Positions 1 through 40,361 of a stretch of 40,361 nucleotides of DNA are shown piece by piece (position 1 is the first letter of the stretch; the number at the start of each line of letters is the position of its first letter). The translations under genes and the position numbers were made by a program. The notes beneath the pieces are model-generated. The model was not told where the DNA came from and did not search any database. It was given only the letters and a program-made list of their open reading frames with translations. The stretch is from Geosiphon pyriformis uo1. Lineage: Eukaryota > Fungi > Glomeromycota. The DNA is taken from assembly GCA_016748015.1 (NCBI GenBank), contig JAAOMT010000048.1, positions 1 to 40,361 of the forward strand, in the 5' to 3' direction.

Positions 1-898
1 AAACAATAATGGAAACAATAATGTAAAACGTGGAAATAACGGAAACAATAACGGAAACGGTAACAAAGGAAGCAATAACGGAAACAATAATGGAAATAAT
101 AATGGAAAACGTGGAAATAACGGAAACAATAACGGAAACAATAACAAAGGAAATAATAACGGAAACAATAATGGAAACAATAATGTAAAACGTGGAAATA
201 ACGGAAACAATAACGGAAACGGTAACAAAGGAAGCAATAACGGAAACAATAATGGAAATAATAATGGAAAACGTGGAAATAACGGAAACAATAACGGAAA
301 CAATAACAAAGGAAATAATAACGGAAACAATAATGGAAACAATAATGTAAAACGTGGAAATAACGGAAACAATAATGGAAACAATAACAAAGGAAATAAT
401 AACGGAAACAATAATGGAAACAATAATGTTAAACGTGGAAATAACGGAAACAATAATGGAAACAATAACAAAGGAAATAATAACGGAAACAATAATGGAA
501 ACAATAATGTTAAACGTGGAAATAACGGAAACAATAACGGAAACAATAACAAAGGAAATAATAACGGAAACAATAATGGAAACAATAATGTAAAACGTGG
601 AAATAACGGAAACAATAATGGAAACGGTAACAATGGAAGCAATAACGGAAACAATAATGGAAACAATAATGTAAAACGTGGAAATAACGGAAACAATAAT
701 GGAAACGGTAACAATGGAAGCAATAACGGAAACAATAATGGAAACAATAATGGAAAACGTGGAAATAACGGAAACAATAACGGAAACGGTAACAATGGAA
801 GCAATAACGGAAACAATAATGGAAACAATAATGTAAAACGTGGAAATAACGGAAACAATAATGGAAACGGTAACAATGGAAGCAATAACGGAAACAAT
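1..898. repeat. 81-bp tandem repeat (about 11 units) built from GGAAACAATAAY-like 12-bp subunits
   Basis: ACGTGG recurs at 28, 109, 190, 271, 352..., an exact 81-bp period. The array runs into the N gap. Confidence 0.97.
2..898 (+). CDS. Partial CDS: Asn/Gly-rich tandem-repeat protein with Lys-Arg every 27 aa (putative Kex2-processed repeat-peptide precursor)
   Basis: Frame +2 is stop-free from base 2 to the gap. It reads NNNGNNNV-KR-GNNGNNNGNGNKGSNNGNNNGNNNG-KR-GNNGNNNGNNNKGNNNGNNNGNNNV-KR... KR codons (AAA CGT) start at 26, 107, 188, 269, 350, 431, 512, 593, 674, 755 and 836. Many unit-to-unit differences are synonymous in this frame (AAT/AAC, GTA/GTT). The start and stop codons are not in the window. 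Confidence 0.7.
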
Positions 899-14533: not shown

Positions 14534-15874
14534 TCAAGCAAGATCAAAAAGGGAGTTTACAATACCGAAAAAAAATATTCCGATAAATGTGAAATAGGTG
14601 CAATAAAAATTTTCTGGGTCATAGGATCGAGCCAATGGTAACATACCATGCAAAACTGTGTAAAGCAATATCCCGGTGACTATCGAAAACAGGATTCCAG
14701 AAACCCCTTCGTTCCAATATGAGACGAAAACAACGTAGCCGCATAAAGCACCTAACATAGTTGAAATTGCCCCAGCTGCAGCAGCAATTAGGAATGCCTG
14801 CCATTTTGATCGAGTGGCGTAGTAGATAGGTAAGGAAATGACGAGTCCTTCAGGCAATTTGCTAAAATAAAAATAAATAATTTGACATATAAATAAATTT
14901 AAAGTGAGATATTTTATATAAAAAACAAAGCATGTCATTAAAAAAACAGATATTTATTACTGTAAGATGAGAGCAATCGCATAGACTGTGCCGATACGAG
15001 TAGACGCGATTGTTGTGGTGAACAAGGCTAATCCTTCAGGAAAGTTGCTAAAAAAGTAAGTGAACAATCAGATTAAAAAAGATAAAACAACAAAAGAGGA
15101 TCTAAAAATATCAGAATATGACGATTCAAGTACATACTGGATCACTAAAGCAAGTGTAATTTGAAGGCCAAGACGTCGTAGTCTTGCTGCATCATATTGT
15201 GTGGCAGCGAGGTTTTCTGGTAACTCCAATTTCGATTGCTTTTCATCACCATTGTTATTAGATGTGGGCGAAGGACCTGACTCATTTAAAACAACAGCGA
15301 TCTCGCTATCATGACTATGATCATGTTGAAATATTTTCGGCAAATATCTTTTTGCCAAAAATATCAAACATACCGTCAAGATAAAAATAGCTGTAGCTAC
15401 AATGGAACTGTACTTTTTGTCGAACCAGCCTGATTCACGAAAAGAATTTCCAGCTTCTGGAAATAAATCGCCCAATGAAAGATTCAATAAAATACCAGCT
15501 CCAAGAGCTAGTGAGCCCGCCATAAATCCTTTGGATGTTGTAATCCGAAATTCCTTAAACCATGAAAGGTAAGGAAAGAGAGAGTCCAAAAAAGGGATGG
15601 CTGACCCAAGGACACAAGCTACAGCAGCGAGAGCAGTTAGCCCAAATCCAAGTTTAATATTTCCTTGGGCTATTGTTTCTTTACTCGAATCTTGGAGGAA
15701 TACGGAAGGAATTTTTGATTGATCACTAAGATTTGATTCATTATCTGACAAACCACCATGTGCATATATTGTTCTTGGGAAAAGTATCAAGAGCAAAAGA
15801 TATAACAAAACAGCATAAAGAGAGTGATTTTTTGCTCTTACAAAATTAAATAAATTCATATATATGGTCGTCAT
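14534..15874 (-). CDS. ZIP-family zinc/iron transporter (ZupT/GufA-like), 3 exons, about 383 aa
   Basis: Exons 15874-15138, 15047-14961 and 14861-14534 with GT-AG introns. Splicing restores the signature motifs VIHNFPEGL and ILHKLPEGL. There is a His-rich loop (QHDHSHD), multiple TM segments and an N-terminal signal-like segment. Confidence 0.93.
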
Positions 15875-16667
15875 TATAGTGACTTTAGAAGGTGTTTAGT
15901 GTTAAGGTTGTAGCCGTCAATAATTTTAATTGAGCATGAAAAGGCTTTTACAAAAACTGAACAAGAGAAAGGAGAATATTATTAATATACTATGCTCGAA
16001 AAAATGCAGCATAATGAGTACCCCAAAAGTTGTCGGGCTGAAAATTTCAAAGCGTCATACCACCCAGAATAGGAATAGGCGACCGAGTACTAAAGCGAAA
16101 GAATATATCGCTGGTAACACTGAATCACGGGTGAAATGAGTACCCGAGAAGTTACTGAAAAAAATCGTTTCTTTCATAAAATATTAATTATAAAACTGGT
16201 AAAGAGTTATTTGTTCACAAATTTTACTTTTATTGCGTGTGTAACTTGTTCACAGATAATTTGAAAACGCGCAGTTGAAACAAATACACAAAATTTTCGT
16301 AAACTTTTAAAAAAGAGGAGAGTTTTATGTAATCCAACTACCTTTACAAGATCTAATAGCAAAGATCTGGTCTTTTTAAATAAAAGTTCTTACCAACTGT
16401 GTCAGATGAACTAACCCATTCTATCACTAATGCCAATAGTATCTGGACACATATAGTCAATCTTGAGACAGGGTGTCTTTGAAGAACCTCTAAAATCATG
16501 ACCATTTTGATATTGGATTAATATAATATTTGATAATATTTGAGTTGCCTATTGATTGGTTTCCAAGACTATATGCCAAAATTTGCAAAATATAAGATTT
16601 TAAGTAAAGAAAAAAGCAAAAATACAAAGACTTTGAAATTTCTCTTGAAAATTATGGTTTAAAGGTA

Positions 16668-18082
16668 CAGAGGGTGTCCAAAAGTTTCCGAACAAACTTT
16701 GGAGTAACATTCCACATGCTTGAATAATTAGAAAAGCACGAGTTTATTACTAAATTAAGTTAGTTAATTATTTAATTACGCGTTTTTTATTTTTTAAACA
16801 CGCGTGTATAATGTTTTTTCGCAACACGCATAATCGATTTTATTCATACTCGTTTTTTTATAAAAATGAAATGTAACGTGCATATAAAATTTTTTCGTCA
16901 TTTTTATTAAAACAAAATGGGAGCAAAAAAAGATTTAACGATTGCTCAGTGTAATACTATATGCTTATTACAACAGCATGGCAAGAAATATCGTGATATT
17001 GCCAACATAGTCAATTGCAGCTTGACAACAGTTTCGGATACAATAAAACGATTTAAAGAAACTGGTTCAATTGATTCAAGACCTCGTTCAGGACGTCCAC
17101 GTTTATTTACTCACCAAAAATATCGCCGACTTAAACGTTTAGTAACACTTAATGGAAAAAATCGTCGTTTATGTATTGCAAATATACGAACTCTTTGGAA
17201 ACGAAAAACAAAGCAAACTATTTCTCTTAGAACTCTTCGGCGTGCTCTTAAATCGGTTGGATTACGAAATCGTTATGCAAGAAGGAAACCTTTAATCTCA
17301 CCAGCAAATATAGCAGCACGTCTTGCTTGGTTTATTAAACATCAAAATTGGACAAATCAAAAATGGGCAAGAGTATTATGGAGTGACGAATCAACTTTCT
17401 CTCAATTTCAACACAATCGGTCTAGTAAAGTATGGCGTGAACCATCTGAAGAATGGCAATTGTCTTGTGTATCAGCAACAGTCAAACATAGTACAAGTCG
17501 AATGTATTGGGCTTGTTTTTCACGACAAAACATTGGACCAATTGTACCATTATATCAAACGGTAAATGGTACTAGACATGTTGAAATTCTTAACCATTAT
17601 GCCTTACCAACTTTACACCGCATGTTTCCTAAAAACAATGGATGGTTTCAAGAAGATAATGCTACCCCTCATCGATCAAAAACTGCCAAAGAATTTCATA
17701 GCAAAAACAAGTTACGTATTCTTTCTTGGCCTCCTCAAAGTCCAGATCTCAATCCAATTGAAAATTTATGGGCTATAGTAAAATGTAATATTCGTAAAAA
17801 AGAAAAACCGCCAATTACTCTTAAAAAACTTGAAAAGTGTGTTAAAGAAGCTTGGAAAGCAATTCCTAAATCAACGATTATAAAATTAGTTGATAGTATG
17901 CCTCGACGTATTCAAGCAGTAATTATAGCACAAGGAGGACCAACAAAGTATTAAAAGCTTAATAGAAAATTTAGAAAATTACTATAAAATTATAAATATG
18001 TTGTTTATTTTGTTTCATTTTATAAAAAAATAAATATTATTGTTAAATAAAATCTTGTTCGGAAACTTTTGGACACCCTCTG
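16668..18082 (+). mobile_element. Intact Tc1-family DNA transposon (1415 bp)
   Basis: Perfect 28-bp TIRs CAGAGGGTGTCCAAAAGTTTCCGAACAA at 16668-16695 and 18055-18082. TA target-site duplication at 16666-16667 and 18083-18084. Intact transposase inside. Confidence 0.98.
16917..17954 (+). CDS. Tc1-like DD34E transposase, 345 aa
   Basis: N-terminal HTH with a GRPR linker. Catalytic motifs WSDES, FQEDNA and SPDLNPIEN, with 34 residues between the second D and the E. C-terminal GGPTKY. Confidence 0.97.
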   Translation: MGAKKDLTIAQCNTICLLQQHGKKYRDIANIVNCSLTTVSDTIKRFKETGSIDSRPRSGRPRLFTHQKYRRLKRLVTLNGKNRRLCIANIRTLWKRKTKQTISLRTLRRALKSVGLRNRYARRKPLISPANIAARLAWFIKHQNWTNQKWARVLWSDESTFSQFQHNRSSKVWREPSEEWQLSCVSATVKHSTSRMYWACFSRQNIGPIVPLYQTVNGTRHVEILNHYALPTLHRMFPKNNGWFQEDNATPHRSKTAKEFHSKNKLRILSWPPQSPDLNPIENLWAIVKCNIRKKEKPPITLKKLEKCVKEAWKAIPKSTIIKLVDSMPRRIQAVIIAQGGPTKY

Positions 18083-20158
18083 TATCAGTTAAAAACTCAT
18101 ATAGTTCAATGAAAATCCGTATATTAGTTTTCAAAACCTCTTGATAATTTAAAATAGTCCAATAAAAATTAAAGAATTTTATTGAACTTGTGAATTTGAA
18201 TTATGCGCCAGGCTGCAAGTTAATTACCCTTTGGATCTTATTTGATTTGGATTGAAAAAGTTTTATATATGCTAATTTTTTTAGTCACACACTTTATATA
18301 TCGATATTGTTACTTTTTATAACATAATCCCCTAAAATGTGGCTTTTTTGAGAAATCAAGCATTCTCGTTCTTTTATTGATAACCAAAGATGTCCTGTAT
18401 AAAGAATTTGAAATTTTTTATGAAATAATAATGATACATGTAGTAATCAATAAATTGTTTTTTTTTTTCAAGAAAATTCTTAAACATGTGTCATGCGGTC
18501 TATTATTTATTAAGACGCTTAATAGCATAGAAGCTAAAAGAACATGTATAAACGATTTACATATTATGAGAATCAAAAAATTACCTACTAAAAATTTTAA
18601 TGACCAATATTTAGAAGTGAGAACCTAAAAATTTTGATTTCATATTGTAAAGCAAAGCAAAAAATATGTGTATTAGATTATTGAAAATTTATTAAATTTA
18701 AAAAGTGTTTATAGTATTTTCAGCTGAGAATTGCTTTGTTATTATTTCTGATTAGAGTTTTTTTATTAAAGTTCAAACAAGTTTCAAAACTTGATACATA
18801 AAGGAAAGGGTATGTAAAACATGAAAGAAATTTTCAAAAAAGTGGTTCAAAAAGTTTGATTCAAGTTCTATCAATAAATGTTAACTCATAAAACATTTGA
18901 TAAAAACAGGACTTGTTTAGATGGCTCCTGAATTTACTCTAACAGGAAGGTGACCTTTTCATGCAAGTTCCTATCTTATTTGGGTCAATTGAGCTGCCAC
19001 TTTAGCAAAAACTAATCGTTATCTGAAAATTTATTCTTATCAGACAATTGCATGAAAATTCATAACAATTTGGGCTTTAATGTAAATAGATATAGCAGCC
19101 AGTAATGATCCTGAGAATTTTGAATTATAGCTGATTCACTTTTAGTATGGTTTTGATTGTGAAAATAATTGGACTTCCAGTAATGGGAATCTAACATAAA
19201 AAACCTAGATTTCAGGTTTCTTACCATATTTTTTCCATTCAAAAACTTCGGGACATATATCCAAGTAATTTATTAGAACAAATCATATTCAATTTTTTCG
19301 ACTGAATTATTAAGCAATGCCGAATGATTGTGGGTCCGTTATGAAGGTCAGCGTGAATAAGATTGGTTTCAAAAATATGACAAAGTCAATATTTATTGCC
19401 AAACTGGGGTCTTGAAATGAAATAAAATTTTGAAAATAGTTTTTTAATGAATGAAAATACCTACAAAAGAAAAGATATTGCATTAGTAAAAATACTTATT
19501 CCTTGGGGTATTGCAAGAAAAGTAAGCTAAAGAGGCTAGTAAAAGTTGCTTTAATTACAAAAATTAAAGTCCTATGAATTTATTGAATCAAATATAACAG
19601 ACTCGAAAAGTTAAATATATCAAACTACAGGGTTTTTAATATACAAAATATCAATTACCTAAATTATTTCATAGTTTTCATAAAAATTTTAAATTTTACT
19701 GGTTTTTAATGACCATATTACTGCAATAAAATGAATAATTAGCAATCTATTTAAATAGATTGAAAATTTTATTTTTACTTTTAATATATGTACAAATGAA
19801 AAATATTTAAATAAAGATGTTATTTGAGTCTAATTAAAATAATTGGTTCTCTCATTAATTTTGCTCGAGAAAGCTTTATTCCAATTTAATATTATCTGTC
19901 ACTATGTGTCAACATGATTATCAAGTCTGTTCGTAGGCAAAATTTTGGTTCCCTAAAAAGTAAATTAAATAGAAAGGGATTTTAGAAAAGAAAAAAAACA
20001 ATTTAATTGCATAATATATCAACTATTTTCATTCTTTTGATTTCATCATCCCACCCCCAGAGTTTATTAAATAACTAAATTTCAGGATTCTAGTAGCAAA
20101 ACTGTGGTTTAAATGAGTATAAATATTTGGCAAGTGTTTAATTCTCAAGCACTTCATA

Positions 20159-21991: not shown

Positions 21992-23748
21992 TCAACAATT
22001 ATCCTTCTCTTTTGCAAAATTTCCATTTGAAAGTTCTTCCAATGATCGACCTTTTGTTTCTGGTATAAAAGTAGTGACTAAAAGTCCAAGCAACATGAAG
22101 AATGCAAATAGTTGCAAGAGATGAGGCATAAATTCATTGGGACCTCCAATGTCTTTAAGTTGAGAAAATCCAATTTGGGAAACAATTGCACCCAGTTTTC
22201 CAGAAGCTGCTGAAATACCATGACATGTAGACCGATATCTTGTTGGAAAAACTTCTCCAGGTATAATAAATGTTGTTGTATTTGGACCAAAATTTTGAAA
22301 GAACTTGAGGCAATTGATAGAATATAAGTGTTAATTATTAGAGAAAATTATAACATTCAAGCCATAAACTTATAAAATTTACCTGAGACAAAGTGAATAA
22401 AATAATGAATAATACAGTCGAGGATGATATAATGATGTTGTACAAGAAGCCGAGAATGAGAAATAGTAGAGTCAAAATGCTGAACCCCAAAATTTGAATT
22501 CGTTTACGACCCCATGAATCAATCAAGAAAACCGTAAACCAATAGCCGGGTACCGTCCCCATTACTGTGATAATCAAATTTCCCAGGGCGATTCTTTGAA
22601 GAGTTTCATAGGCATTTGAGCCCCCAGAATAACCAATGGCATTCAAGATAATTGCATTATTCAACCCAAGACCATAATATGCGATATCAACGCAAAACCA
22701 AGCGACCGTCGTTCCAACCAAAACTTTACCATTTCTCCATTTACCAAAATATTCGCAGAATTCTTTAAATCCGCTTTTAGGAGGCTCACCAGGACGAACT
22801 GAAACATCTGGATTTCTTTCATGCTCTGCTTGTTTAACAATCCCCTTAACATCCATAACATAACGAGGAGTTTCCGAGATTGTAAGACGAAAGTAAAGTG
22901 CAATAATGGCCGGAATTATACCAAGCCCAATAATCAGCCGCCAGCAGTAATCAATATACATCGCATCTCTCCTTATATCATCTTTGTAAATGGCCAAGCT
23001 CACGACCGAGACAATAGTGCCAGCTAATATCCCAAAGCCTTGCATGGCAAACACAGAAGCCATCATTGCACCCCTTCTCGCGGTTGTTGCATATTCGGAT
23101 GTGATAACAGCAGATAACGGATAGTCACCACCAACTCCCAGACCTAAAATGAAACGCCAAAAGATGAGCGTGCCATAAATCCGAATCGCAAATGATTCTG
23201 CTGCCAAGGCTGACCCGATAGTTGCAATTATAATGAGAATTAATTCTACTCCATAAATCTAAAATATTCAAGGAAAAAGTAATAGACAGAAAAGACAAAA
23301 TCTTGGTAAATTCAAAGGTTTCTAAAGTCAAATAAAAATTACAATTTTCATTTAAAACAACATTTACTCGTTTACGACCAAAATGATCTGCCAAAAACCC
23401 GAATAGCAATTGTCCAATAAAAGTGCCAATTGCGGCTGAACTTTTTAATCCCAAATCGATATTGTTTGGCACTACATTATCCTTATCAGCAAAATATATA
23501 TATCCAAGCATAGCGGAGACAATGTTAATTGCAAATAAATCATACGCATCCGTAAAAAATCCGATTCCAGCTATCAAAGAAGTCCGAATATGGAACCAGC
23601 CAAAATTTTCATTATTCATCTCTGCAAGTGTTCCTCGTCGTCTTTGATGGACTTTTTGTGATTCAGGTAATTGAATTTGGTCGATCAGGGGATCATTCTT
23701 GTGTTCCATTTCCACATATTCTGTATTTGAGTTTTTTAATTGGGACAT
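21992..23748 (-). CDS. PHO84: High-affinity inorganic phosphate:H+ symporter (MFS, PHS family), 3 exons, about 522 aa
   Basis: Exons 23748-23368, 23258-22383 and 22303-21992 with phase-0 GT-AG introns. Motifs GFFTDAYDLF, DHFGRKR, GGDYPLSAVITSE, ETPRY, FFQNFGPNTTTF and PETKGRSLEE. Confidence 0.96.
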
Positions 23749-25008
23749 TTTTCAAGGTCCAAGAAGAAATATATTTTCCTGTCTCTTAAAAAGTGATCAA
23801 TTGACTTTTTCTGATTGTTATTTGGATCTCTAAGTGAAGAAAAGAAATTAAAAGTCTTTCTATTTATTTGAATATTTAACTGCGATCTTTTTCCGCCTTT
23901 AAATGAGATAAGGAATACATAATTGATTAGGGAGTAGCATTCTAAAAAATAATTTCTTGAAACGGAATTTTTTATTCCGTTATATATTTATGTTTATATA
24001 TGTGATTGTAATTTGATTACATTTTTTTAGAATTTTTACCAAATATTTGGCAAGGCAAAAATATTATATATCTTGTTTGGCTTTCTTCAACCCTTCAGAT
24101 AAAGGAGCTTAAATTTTTAATTAATCACTGAATTATTTCAAATGACTTTTGTTGGTGTGATATACCGATTTTAATCGCTCCTTTAAACTCATGAATTATT
24201 TTTTAATGGGCTGTGGGAGTTTGCTTTTGAAAAGGTTTTCTCTTTCAAAACTCAAAAGATATGCTATTAAATTAGGAAGGTATCACGATCTATGATTCAA
24301 GATTTAAAAGCATAGGAAACTAAATAATCATTTTGGATAGCTGAAGAAAGTTGCCATGAAGAAATAATATTTTGAAATAAGTGCTAAAAATCATTCTAAA
24401 AAAATGATTTTTTTAAAATATTCAAGATTTTTAATGTGTGAAAATGTTCGAGATTTTGTTTTTTTTTCTGTTCAGTCTAAAGTTGTTTATAAGTTGAAAC
24501 CGACGAGTTTTTATCCAATGAGTTTTCTTTTAAGACAAAACCCCCCATTAACATTAAAACAAAGTAGCAGAGACTTCAATTTCTTTTATCAGGTAAGTTA
24601 CGTAAATTCGTGGCGGAAAAGAGTAAATAAAAATTAATTTTTTAAAGTAACGTGTCTCTTTTGAAGTTGAAACCAAAAATTTTAAAATTTGTGATTTTCC
24701 CACGAAAAAAGGAGAAATTTTTTTTTTGTTTTTATACCAATTTTTCTGATAACTTAAAAATGTGCCAGTTGCTCTATCATAGTGATTAGATATACTTTTT
24801 CTGTTAGAATAAGGTCCGATTTTGTTCTTACTTATTCCGACATCTTTTCGAAAATATTCTACTTTGAGTAGGATGTTAAACCTAGAGATCTTGATGAAAG
24901 GTAGTCATAAACCAAAGAATTTTGTTTAGTTCTAAAGTTTGGTGATATTTTACATTCGACGAATTCTTAGCTGCAACATTGATTGGCTTCAAAATAAATA
25001 TCCTCAAA

Positions 25009-25887
25009 TCAAAGTTCAATGTAAATGTAATGATTAAAATTGGATAATCTGTCGGGATAGGCTTCTAATTTCTCGAAATCTCCCAAGTGTTCCAATAATT
25101 CTTTTTTAATATGTCTTTCATATATATAATTTTCACAATTTCCTTTACCCTCTGCAGCAAATTCCGAAAAAGTTTTCCACAATTGGGAAGGCCTGATATC
25201 CACATTTTTTTGGATCTTCTCAATCAGTTCCATAACCCTCCTTTTAGACGCCTTTCCGTGTTGGTGTATATCCCCATGCCAGCATGTAGCATGGCAAGAT
25301 CTTGGGATGTGGCATAAAGAACTCTTGGTCACATTTCGAATTGCCTCGATAAAGTCGAGATAATAATTTTGTAGCTTGTCTTTGGTTTTCAAGGAAATTT
25401 GATAAAACAAGTGTCTCGTTCTGTATTCAAAAAAATCATCAATAATAATTTTTGATGAATCTTTATATGCTTTTGGGAATTGGTACTTTTCTGCCAAAAA
25501 AAGGGTTTCAAGGGGGTTTTCATAGACAGAACTTTCGAGAAATTCACAGCAAATTTTCGTGAGACTGTTCAACTCATACTTATCCGATAAAGGAAGCAGG
25601 TACAGGACGTTTTCCCATTGAATCCTTAGGAAAGAGGCTGGGTAAATAAAGGTTAACAGATCCTCAATATAATTGGGTGCTTCATACAATGTGACAGCCT
25701 CAAGAGAACGTTCATGATTTTCTATACTGTTACAGCTCTGAAACATAGCCTTGAAGACGGGAGAAGCTAATTCCATGATTTTTTTATGAACTTTAAAAAC
25801 GGCTAGCGATTCATTGATATTGATTAAAAGATCACCATCTTCGTAAAAGTGGGTCCCCTGATCAATTTTATTTTCTCCAGCTGTCAT
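25009..25887 (-). CDS. BTB/POZ-domain protein, intronless, 292 aa
   Basis: DGDLLINI..FKVHKKIMELASPVFKAMF, EDLLTFIY and LSDKYELNSL..CCEFL, followed by a BACK-like helical region LFLAEKY. The C-terminal region contains Cys/His residues (CHIPRSCHATCWH). Confidence 0.9.
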   Translation of the reverse strand: MTAGENKIDQGTHFYEDGDLLININESLAVFKVHKKIMELASPVFKAMFQSCNSIENHERSLEAVTLYEAPNYIEDLLTFIYPASFLRIQWENVLYLLPLSDKYELNSLTKICCEFLESSVYENPLETLFLAEKYQFPKAYKDSSKIIIDDFFEYRTRHLFYQISLKTKDKLQNYYLDFIEAIRNVTKSSLCHIPRSCHATCWHGDIHQHGKASKRRVMELIEKIQKNVDIRPSQLWKTFSEFAAEGKGNCENYIYERHIKKELLEHLGDFEKLEAYPDRLSNFNHYIYIEL

Positions 25888-26184
25888 TTCTATAAGGTTT
25901 TTGTCGTTAAGAGTTAATCGAGTTCAAAGTTTATATCTTCTTAGTTACTAAATAATTTTTATTAGCTGAGATAAAGATAGCATCTAAATAGGTCGCACTT
26001 TATATCTTTTCAAAGTTGCAAAAATGTGACACATTTATTAAGGTATTATCTTTAGCTAAGATCATTAGTTTGCAAAGATAATTTCATAAATCTTTGGTGA
26101 ATCAAGAATAAAATGATTTATAACATGTCCTTGCAATACGGATAGTGAGTCTAATTTATCTTCCAATTAGTTTATTATCTAGTA

Positions 26185-35502: not shown

Positions 35503-38159
35503 ATGCCTACAATCTTGTTTCCGAAAGGTATTTTTTACTTTTACTTTTTTTTCGCTTTTCCGATCACTTTACACTAGCTCCCTGTTTATTTTGTAAAATT
35601 ATTTTCCTTGCGGCAAAAAGATCAAAATCTCACACCCCAACTCTGTTAGATGTGTTTATCAGGCTGAACCCAGCAGACGTTAACGATGGAACTCCATCGC
35701 AAGGTATTCTGTTCGGGTTGCGAGAAAAAAGCCTAGATCAAGGCTTGATCGTTCACGTTAAGGTACATTTCAACTTTCAATCTGGAAACTTGTCACGATC
35801 GTCACTCAATTTTCTCAACTTTTAGGGTTTTGTCCCATATATATCTAATTCACAAGATTTAGTCAGTACAATTGCCAAATACATGAATTGGAATGGGCAA
35901 ACAGTCTTAGGCTGGTTTGCGGTAAGTTTAACAAAGGAAATTATGTGACATTGTTATTTTTCAGGAAGTATTCACCGCCACCACTGATAGTAGTTGTCAA
36001 TTTCAATAGGCACCTACCATGGACGTACTTCAAATTTGTGATGCCACAAGTATAGCATCTGCATATTTTCGCTCCGTTCAATCTGCGATGCTTCAAGTAA
36101 TTGCAGCGAATCATTTAAGTCGACATATTGGTAAGAATCCTCTTTACCGTAATAGTCACATTTCATGACTCTCTTTTGAAACGGGTTGTTATTTGTTATC
36201 CCTTCTCTAATATTATTGATTGAAAAAGTCATTTAATAATATTGAACTACCGACGCAACAATCAAAGAATATGACGTTAAAGAAATCCCCAATCTGATTG
36301 CCCAGGAATCATATAACCTTTTTCAAGACCTCATCGGAATTGTCATTGGTGGACATACCATTTCTACGAATAAAACGACAAATTCTCCCGCAACAGACAT
36401 ACTGAGCACTAGAGCCCAGGCATTCGTATCCACCCCAACGTTGATTCAGGTTCTAAACCAATTGCAATCATTAGCAAAGGAACCTGAAATCAATACCAAT
36501 GAGATGCAACAACATGCGTCTGATCCCCTTTCTACTGAATTTGACGGACTTGCTTTGCTTGCTGCAGCGGTAAGTAGCACTATCAGCGATAATCATGATA
36601 CTGATGTCATTTCGAAGAATGATAGTGAGGAGGAAGGTGGTAAATTGGGTGAATTGAATGCCGTTTGGGGACATGGCCTGCCATCTACCTCCATCGGTGG
36701 GTCAAAAGTCAAGCAAAGAACAAGGAGAGCGAGTACCACTGATATAGTTGATTCTCGAAATTTGAGAACTACTATCAACACCTTGGAGCTTCCGAATGGT
36801 AGTAGTAAAAAGAGAAAGGATATCGAGGGAGTAAATTCTGGACGTGTTTCCAAGAAAAAGGTGTGTTTTTTAATGAATTCCCATCTACTATGGGCCTTGG
36901 GGTTAGATAATTTTGTACTCTAATCTGTGATTATTTGATCAGACCAAAACAGTAATAACAACGACTACCGATGATGTTAAACCTGTTCCTTTTAACATCA
37001 TTTCTGGCCAAGGATCAGAATACTTGCATGAATCCCATAGTGCCAACAGGCAAGAAAAGAACAGCGAAAAGAAATTTGCTTCGCTTTCATCATCCAAAGC
37101 TAAGTTAACCCACCATAAATTGTTGATATCAGTTTCTATCATTCCACAGAGTTTGACGAATCGGTCTTCCCAACACTCACGGCGTCCTTTTTCACCCCCA
37201 TCGAGAATAGTACAATATCAACTCAAGAATATGAGATTTTTGCTAACACTGACGTATGCACTCCTGCTGAACAACGTATAAAAACTGCCTTCAATGCGAT
37301 CACATATCATCTCACGACTCACACACAAGAAAAAATTGAGCTATATGAGAAATCATGCAGAGAATATGAAATGTTAATGAAAATTCTCGAAGGGCTAGGT
37401 AAAGCGGAAGAAGACGAGGCATTAGTTAAAAGATTGGAATCATCAATGGATACTGGCTCACGTCGCAAAGAACTAAAAAGTGAAATGGAATCAGCTGAAG
37501 TCACCAAAGAGGAAAATCTTCATACATCGATAGAAAGTTTCCTCCATGGCGGAGAGAAAATAAAGAAAGAGATCTTGGCGAAGGAACTTGAGATGCCATC
37601 TAGCGAGAATCTCCTTCAAGAAAATATAATAGAGGGAGAACAGTCTGGAAAAAACTCGGTTTCCAAGTTGAATAAGGCTTCCGAATACCACATTACGGGA
37701 ACCGAACCTCCAAACTCGGACAAGGAGGTAATAGAAGAAATTCCTGAAATAATTATAGAAAATGGGAAAAACCGTAAAAGTGAGGAGGAAGAGGCCGACA
37801 TGAAACCAGAAGAGGGCGAAGTTCTTGACGAAAGGCTTTTAATTGTTTTATTAAAGCCTGATAAGTCCAATCAAAAAAGTGGAAATGGTAATATCGCAGA
37901 AACTATTTTGTCTTCTACAGAAGATGGGGAAATTGATGATGACGATCCTGGGATTTTTACCAAATCTCGACCACGATTGCAACGTTCTCCAATCTTTAAT
38001 GTGAAACCAACATCTCACACTAACTCAAAAGAAGTAAGGCCATCATTCACTTCAATTCCAAAAGAAAGCAATAGTCGTCAACTAGAAATACCGAAGGAAA
38101 AATCAACCACTAGAATTAAAAGCCCTGATTGGGCTTGGGATGATGAAGAGCTCGGATGA
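35503..38159 (+). CDS. Multi-exon hypothetical protein: MPN-like N-terminus, predicted coiled coil and acidic disordered tail
   Basis: Spliced reading MPTILFPK/DVFIRLNPAD..SQGILFG..IVHVK/GFVPY..VLGWFA/APTMD..., with later exons through about 36860. A GC-AG intron at 37050-37132 leads to the terminal exon ending SPDWAWDDEELG* at 38159. An alternative first exon starts at ATG 35402, and one acceptor near 36.27 kb is uncertain. Confidence 0.75.
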
Positions 38160-38586: not shown

Positions 38587-39198
38587 TTAGTAAGGTAAAT
38601 TAGGCTTGTTCCTCTCTTTTTCCGCGCGTTTCTCCTATGAAGTTGAAATAGAACCAGGATTAAATAACATGCATAAAATCTACTCGAACCGATAATCCGG
38701 GCCAAATTTTACTTACCGCACGCCATTTGGCGACAGTTTGCGGCATTTCTGCCAATGCCTTTTCAATCTTGGCAATCCTAGAGGTGTATGAAATGAATAA
38801 ATTCAGTAGAAAATCAATCATTTATATCCAGCATTGCAAATACTCAAAAACTCTTCATGCCATTACCTGGCTGGTAACTCTCGTTCCCATTTGTGTCCCT
38901 CACGTGGGGTATCTCTCGGCGGTTTCCTCGGCGGCTTGTCAGGCATTCCTATACTTGCTGGATCAATGCCCAAGTAGAGACAGTTTTTTCGCATATCCCC
39001 TTGTTGACGAAGTGGAATGCGAGGACCAAGCCATCTCCGGCGGTTAGTAACTTTATTAATGAGCCAGCGAGGTTTAAAGTCTTCTGGTTTATAGATTTGT
39101 TGAATATGGGCGAGTTTTTTGGGTGAAATATACTTTTTACCAAAGCCTCTTATAAAATTCAGGGCCGGCGTAACAGCTTTTTGGAGAGGTTGCGTCAT
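38587..39198 (-). CDS. MRPL25: Mitochondrial large-subunit ribosomal protein mL59 (YmL25), 3 exons, about 146 aa
   Basis: Exons 39198-38867, 38777-38717 and 38634-38587. The motifs W..PRIPLRQQ..M.K, EGHKWER...RIAKIEKALAEMP..VAKWR and C-terminal KPNLPY match the fungal mL59 pattern. It is a basic protein. Confidence 0.82.
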
Positions 39199-39332
39199 TT
39201 TTGGAGAAAACTTTTTAATCGATCGGTTGGCCCTGATTCAAATTAATGTAAGATGCATCTGATCGAGATACATTATATCAGCATCATCATGCAGATTATT
39301 GCGACTAGCCTTCTTTTGACTTACCTTTTGAT
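39199..39332. promoter_or_regulatory. Compact bidirectional promoter between MRPL25 and the peroxidase
   Basis: The divergent start codons are only 134 bp apart. Confidence 0.6.
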
Positions 39333-40361
39333 ATGTTAGGCACAAAGGGAGATTTTGCAGCCGTACGAGAGGCCATTAAAGAAGTGCTGCCACAACCCGG
39401 CTATGACGACGGTTCCGCTGGTCCGGTATTCGTCAGATTAGCCTGGCACGCCTCTGGTACATATGATCTCCACACCAAGACGGGTGGTTCCAACGGTGCT
39501 ACTATGCGGTTTGCGACGGAAGCAAATGACCCGGCGAACGCAGGTTTGGAACGCGCGAGAGAGTTTTTGGAACCTGTAAAAAAGAAGTTTCCTTGGATTT
39601 CTTGTGAGTTTCTAGGTTTAAAAGAGAAAGGAAATTTTAGATCTTGAAAAATATTTCTTTCAATGAAAATTTACAATTTAAATCTCATCTGTGATCCATC
39701 TTTTTGCTCCCATCTTTATGAACAATTTGAGAGGGTAGATGTAAAAATATTATTGTAGCATCAATTCACAAATATTGATCGTCTTTTGGTTTCTAGACGC
39801 TGATTTATGGACTATTGCTGGTGTCGTTGCAATTGAAGCTATGGGTGGGCCAGTTGTCCCATGGAAGCCGGGTCGAACAGACAAGACCAAAGAAAGTGAA
39901 TGTCCATCAAACGGTCGTCTTCCGGACGCTGCTCATACCCAACAACACGTGCGTGATGTATTTTATCGAATGGGTTTCAATGATCAGTGAGTTTTTTCGC
40001 TCACTTGACTGCCATTTGAATATGCTCTCTTATTTTTCTTATAAAGATTTTCGTTTTTGAAGGCCTCAGTTAATTAAGCATTTTATTCGATGATAGGGAG
40101 ATTGTTGCGCTGATTGGTGCGCATTCAATTGGTCGTTGTCATAAGGACCGTTCAGGGTACGATGGTCCATGGACGTACACTCCTACCCGGTTTTCAAATC
40201 AATAGTAAAGCATTTCTATTTCAAAATATTATTGCTATTTCGTGTTTAAAAGTTCCTTTACATAATCATAAAAGTTTGTTTCATTTTAATTTAATCAGCT
40301 TCATCCAATTATTAAAGCAGAACTGGTCACTGAAAAACGTGAATGGGAAAATACAATTTAA
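39333..40361 (+). CDS. Class I heme peroxidase (cytochrome c peroxidase family, CCP2-type without an obvious mitochondrial presequence); 3'-incomplete
   Basis: Distal-His motif [16 protein letters not shown], plus [17 protein letters not shown] (across an intron), [28 protein letters not shown] and SGYDGPWT. At least 4 exons; the gene runs off the window. Confidence 0.95.

Follow-up and report, generated by a model that had tools for sequence, protein, structure and literature searches.

A candidate kexin-processed Asn/Gly repeat precursor of the GpRIC family, missing from the annotation of Geosiphon pyriformis

By comparing a repeat array at the end of a scaffold with its relatives in the same genome, we identified what the codon patterns indicate to be a real coding fragment of an unannotated gene of the GpRIC / GN-rich family in Geosiphon pyriformis. 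The array opens the window, by which we mean the whole stretch of 40,361 nucleotides analyzed here; scaffold C409, whose first 40 kb the window covers, belongs to a genome assembly of 128.3 Mb and 792 pieces. On balance, we slightly favor a model in which the gene encodes a secreted RIC precursor that is cut by kexin into 25-mers, which then stack into a solenoid or cross-beta fibril of the wall or matrix. No fungus other than G. pyriformis is known to take up a cyanobacterium into its cell. Among the genes reported for Geosiphon, those of the RIC family rank with the most highly expressed, yet they are nearly absent from its annotation.

The copies of the array agree with 95% matches and 0% indels, and its units fall into six distinct DNA types, arranged A B A B C C B D E F (Table 1). 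Frame +2 contains no stop in 299 codons, compared with 75 stops in frame +1 and 6 in frame +3, which confirmed the preliminary description of a plus strand that is open in this frame only. The KR pairs of the frame are spaced exactly 27 codons apart. At least ten complete KR-bounded peptides had been reported; exactly ten were found, and the three sequences quoted at the time are among them. They represent four sequences (5, 2, 2 and 1 copies) of 2.4-2.5 kDa and are composed of 65% Asn and 27% Gly (92% together), with no Pro, no aromatic residue and hardly any hydrophobic residues. No transmembrane segment was detected in the 299 aa of the fragment, whose C-terminus falls in the assembly gap.

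Table 1. Features located in the window; coordinates count from its first base.
Feature	Position	Strand	Basis or remark
81-bp tandem array, 11.1 copies	1-898	+	repeat detection, unit comparison
Putative internal part (299 codons, without visible start or stop) of an Asn/Gly repeat precursor in the GpRIC family	2-898	+	
First of 11 KR codon pairs (AAA CGT)	26-31	+	predicted kexin site
Further KR pairs	every 81 bases, last at 836-841	+	predicted kexin sites
Ten predicted 25-aa peptides, four variants	32-835 (32-106, 113-187, ... 761-835)	+	
Assembly gap, 897 N	899-1795	none	
ZIP zinc transporter	14537-15895	-	
Tc1/mariner element, apparently intact	16666-18084	+	transposase frame and inverted repeats
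Pho84-type phosphate:H+ symporter	about 21995-23751	-	TIGR00887, E 1.8e-99 (one exon)
BTB-domain protein	25012-25923	-	
Long open frames of 225 and 346 codons, both rich in Ser/Thr/Asn	36246-38156	+	
Mitoribosomal mL59	38866-39237	-	
Class I haem peroxidase	39309-39644	+	

The open frame alone is weak evidence for coding, because 31% of shuffled 81-mers also have an open plus-strand frame. The constancy of KR is likewise uninformative. All 11 pairs are indeed fixed, as had been emphasized, but the array is 95% identical and 21 of the 27 codons of each unit are invariant, so that the chance of K and R both being fixed is about 0.6. Moreover, the variation had been characterized as largely synonymous, and this proved incorrect: four of the six variable codons in the unit change the residue (N/G, K/N, S/N and G/V) and two are silent, with GTA/GTT as a further silent difference in the array.

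Therefore, the case for coding rests on the paralogues and not on the array alone. The array DNA gave 62 matches in its own genome. The loci retrieved include about two dozen different ORFs in which a hydrophobic leader precedes a body made of the window's repeat, with between 0 and 19 KR sites each. Mismatches to 22 paralogous loci numbered 454 at the first, 448 at the second and 1222 at the third codon position of frame +2; these counts are not mutually independent, but the third-position excess appears at every locus and, at the level of sequence comparison, genuinely supports a coding role for frame +2. A non-coding minisatellite, or a gene on the minus strand, where two frames over the array are likewise stop-free, would agree with the frequent openness of shuffled units. 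However, this alternative is largely refuted by the codon-position counts, and in the paralogues the same frame stands behind an ATG and a signal peptide, which leaves it extremely improbable.

The relationship to the family extends to the details of the unit. From 251 distinct 13-mers of the paralogues, we obtained the consensus xG[SND]xNGNxNGNxN, which the window unit fits, each 27-residue unit being one family 13-mer plus a 14-mer bearing KR. The closest paralogue (C584:180837-182138; 73% DNA identity to the window) is an intron-free and complete ORF of 434 aa with a signal peptide and 4 KR sites, and its segments measure 26, 93, 92, 92 and 131 residues. The exact KR junction of the window is also present in C584, and a genome search for the 20-base junction pattern recovered only the window, C584 (three times) and two broken relatives. 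The length of KR-delimited peptides among the paralogues varies between 25 aa and more than 140 aa. Among the KR-bounded repeat units seen, the 25 aa of the window are the shortest (the next being 32, 59, 68 and 92), and the window copy has both the shortest KR spacing, 27, and the simplest composition.

The preliminary description had anticipated that annotation would miss the gene, and we found that neither the fragment nor any of nine complete paralogues is present in the protein collection; the family is therefore poorly annotated. The sole annotated member, G9A89_006378 (P0001), is identical over its last 353 aa to locus L007 (C580:250.9-252.5 kb) and appears to join an F-box-like protein wrongly to a RIC gene, with an assembly gap between the two. 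Pfam holds no family for the window fragment or for two complete paralogues, protein searches with the fragment returned compositional matches only (best E 5e-3), and all Atlas features for the fragment stayed under 0.8. A profile of the 13-mer matched 127 proteins among 1.84 billion, some of them named as Coccomyxa, hop or apparently bacterial, so the 13-residue repeat is not confined to Glomeromycotina, whether by homology or by convergence. Only 2 of the 127 show the repeated KR-plus-repeat architecture, and one of these is the Geosiphon protein. In P0004, P0006, P0010-P0012, P0014 and P0029, the 13-residue frame forms the N-terminal region of secreted proteins. Within the Geosiphon set formed by L004, L006, L018 and L055, some loci interleave the Asn/Gly segments with KR-bounded peptides of 3-5 residues that have a high content of Trp, Tyr and acidic residues, and others finish each segment with three Trp.

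The peptide family had not been recognized in the preliminary description, but it has been published. GN-rich secreted proteins were described in Ambispora, Paraglomus and Geosiphon, including GpRIC1-3 (MH580277-9); their KR motifs were proposed as Kex2 sites, their GN-richness was linked to amyloid, and the family was regarded as disordered proteins (PMC8786786). Kex2 cleavage and amyloid tendency are thus already in print for the family as proposals, and the surprise offered by our model is limited for this reason. Reads of a cDNA library were assigned to GpRIC1, GpRIC2 and GpRIC3 at 22.3%, 5.0% and 3.0%, respectively (PMC8786786 Table S9). The window copy is either a new family member or possibly the already cloned GpRIC1. 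We also considered GpRIC2, given that a 26-aa leader, 15 units and a last peptide would sum to 456 aa, but we rejected this assignment, since the measured parts of the C773 gene by themselves add up to 456. That locus (L054; C773:379.1-380.5 kb) encodes a leader of 23 aa, and its first and last segments, on either side of a gap, are identical and 143 aa long; its three segments sum to 456 aa, the length of GpRIC2. GpRIC2 is therefore probably the C773 gene, the agreement at 456 aa being one of length arithmetic only; junction motifs common to C773 and Pabra_AGL2, the best query for GpRIC2, point to the same gene.

The start, the signal peptide and the stop of the window copy are out of sight, because the array begins at base 1 of the scaffold on the left and runs into the gap on the right. 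Leftward extension of the contig, which had been recommended, is thus impossible. If the scaffold join is right, the gap must contain the remaining array and the stop codon; the DNA downstream of it is AT-rich and non-coding, with 12% GC. Searches of the assembly revealed no orphan 5′ end or 3′ end of the window's subfamily and no second piece of its array. With both ends missing and 4 of about 6 members of the nearest subfamily broken (three in C401 and one at C580:153.9 kb), a pseudogene is a real possibility. On this reading, the array would be a pseudogene or an uncleaved or unsecreted RIC remnant, homogenized by unequal crossing-over. The predominance of residue-changing differences within the array would suit such a remnant, and homogenization by itself keeps a frame open. 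However, the 11 units contain neither an indel nor a stop, and frameshifting variants of the unit length, which had been named beforehand as evidence against a gene, do not occur among them. Additionally, the residue changes all fall within the variable positions or the alphabet of the family, and the broken relatives are short, whereas the long homogeneous arrays of the family sit in intact ORFs. We consider a degenerate copy quite unlikely.

We next turn to processing. KEPs are defined by at least three motifs between KR, RR or KK sites (Le Marquer 2019), and the window copy has ten complete motifs; they are also defined by a kexin in the genome, and one kexin gene, C608, was found, with a P-domain (E 2.7e-12), a leader, a prodomain and a C-terminal hydrophobic segment. 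The genome also encodes S10 carboxypeptidases, which are placed at class level only and carry no Kex1 assignment. Kex2 selectivity lies mostly in P2 and P1, with an aliphatic P4 preferred (PMC8528282); the window sites fit at P2 (Lys) and P1 (Arg), but have Asn at P4. The residue preceding KR is Val (8 sites) or Gly (3 sites), and Gly-Asn follows it at all 11. None of the 11 window sites is followed by a Ste13 XA/XP dipeptide, the feature by which alpha-pheromone-type precursors are recognized. A search of the genome for PF11807 (UstYa/DUF3328), a gene expected close to precursors of dikaritin-type RiPPs, gave no match, and the positive control likewise gave none. As for the earlier proposal of a secreted precursor cut by kexin, the complete paralogues, with their signal peptides and KR sites, and the kexin gene uphold it for the family, while the signal peptide of the window copy itself lies outside what can be seen. 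We regard secretion and cleavage of the window copy as rather likely. Cleavage is not needed throughout the family, since many paralogues have no internal KR.

We propose the following putative route from gene to material. The gene would be an intron-free member of the RIC (GN-rich) family, of which the window holds an internal part, and its product would resemble the complete paralogues in having, at its start, a signal peptide followed by a short pro-piece that closes with KR. The precursor would enter the secretory pathway, where Golgi kexin would cut after each KR and, by analogy with established Kex2/Kex1 biology, a Kex1-type carboxypeptidase would trim the ends, so that ten or more 25-aa Asn/Gly peptides would be freed per chain. 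Before cleavage, the KR spacer may prevent the chain from falling into register; once freed, the peptide copies could stack into a hydrophilic beta-solenoid or cross-beta fibril, which would provide bulk material for the extracellular wall or matrix. The cDNA abundance of GpRIC1-3 suits a bulk structural product. Self-assembly as the function of the window peptides nevertheless stays tentative, with a chance that we place just short of even.

The structural models bear on this last step. When folded alone as a single sequence, the window chain reached a pLDDT of 39. The fold with an alignment is that of the closest paralogue, computed for eight repeats of C584 with 26 rows. The best AlphaFold2 model of the C584 repeat had a pLDDT of 79 and a pTM of 0.71, and the other four had pLDDT values of 63, 58, 44 and 44, so that one of the five passed a threshold of 70. 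The best model contains two short strands every 13 residues; on this prediction, each 13-residue repeat of the family would make one coil of a narrow beta-solenoid that carries ladders of Asn. The nearest solved fold was the Tenebrio antifreeze protein (Z 7.6, rmsd 2.7, 82 aligned), where a Z under 8 for a repeat protein may reflect merely a common arrangement; a Foldseek search of the PDB found nothing. The released window peptide comprises 12 + 13 residues, which is about two coils, and the coil, if real, could therefore form only by stacking with other copies. We speculate that such two-coil peptides are mass-produced and stack in trans into a kexin-triggered beta-solenoid fibril with Asn ladders and hardly any hydrophobic core, which would be a structural component of the bladder wall or of the compartment housing Nostoc, and that the gene may be GpRIC1, whose transcript class is the most abundant of those reported; in this specific form, the idea is doubtful.

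The same gene and the same processing may instead yield peptides that remain soluble or disordered and act as a signal or effector toward Nostoc, as a water-binding or osmotic filler, or as an antifreeze-like binder of surfaces. The treatment of the family as disordered in the literature (PMC8786786), the disordered single-sequence model and the scarcity of hydrophobic residues are consistent with this explanation, and ice-binding solenoids are among the nearest folds. However, the strict 13-residue period, with Gly and Asn fixed in 251 variants, argues for a structural constraint, and the wide range of peptide lengths among the paralogues is unlike that of a receptor ligand. The peptides also have neither Ste13 dipeptides nor a Thr-x-Thr ice face. 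We judge this explanation rather unlikely. A polymer that stores or transfers nitrogen fixed by the cyanobacterium, banking ~41-43 N atoms per 25 residues, would account for the high Asn content and fit both the very high expression of the family in the cDNA library and a host whose partner fixes nitrogen. However, the family also occurs in Ambispora and Paraglomus, neither of which has a Nostoc partner, and storage would require neither a strict period nor secretion, which makes such a role very unlikely. As the shortest and simplest of the units seen, and cheap to synthesize, the window 25-mer is the easiest handle on the family, and in particular on the question of whether RIC proteins are self-assembling solenoids or amyloids or are disordered.

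The remainder of the window holds several further genes. The transposase of the Tc1/mariner element has 347 codons (16911-17951) with HTH and DDE_3 domains, and the inverted repeats of the element are 44 bp long, 86% complementary and start with TACAG. The Pho84-type symporter is of interest for nutrient exchange in the Geosiphon symbiosis. Nothing in the ZIP, BTB, mL59 and peroxidase genes points to a link with the repeat gene, and the two long Ser/Thr/Asn-rich frames gave no Pfam or NCBIfam match.

Several known systems resemble the window copy in part. The coil geometry of the Tenebrio molitor antifreeze protein 1EZG (Z 7.6) and of the Lolium ice-binding protein 3ULT (Z 6.7) is similar to that of the predicted 13-mer, but the RIC repeat has no Cys core and no Thr ladder, and identity is 8-11%; the likeness is one of shape alone and implies no function. 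KEPs, as presented in the literature passages considered (PMC6339444, PMC7329392), share with the window at least three near-identical motifs between KR sites; they differ in that the signal peptide lies outside the window fragment and that the window carries no Ste13 XA/XP dipeptides, and those passages do not include the window peptide family. Rep1 of Ustilago maydis yields about 11 peptides through Kex2 from one precursor, and a surface amyloid has been proposed for it (PMC3133707, PMC8528282). The release of many peptides from a single precursor is thus common to both, but there is no sequence likeness, and the repellents are amphipathic and ~37 aa long, whereas the window peptides have 25 aa and are strongly hydrophilic; a water-repellent role is therefore unlikely for the latter. 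The proteins Amlep_AGL4/5 of Ambispora leptoticha and Pabra_AGL1/2/4 of Paraglomus brasilianum (PMC8786786) share the 13-residue frame of the window and, as in its family, have a signal peptide followed by KR. Unlike the window, they contain longer uninterrupted runs and hydrophobic or aromatic residues, and the sequences seen are without its 27-residue KR period. GpRIC1-3, finally, come from the same organism as the window copy and have in common with it the GN-rich repeats and the KR sites, with the architecture of a secreted precursor displayed by the paralogues.
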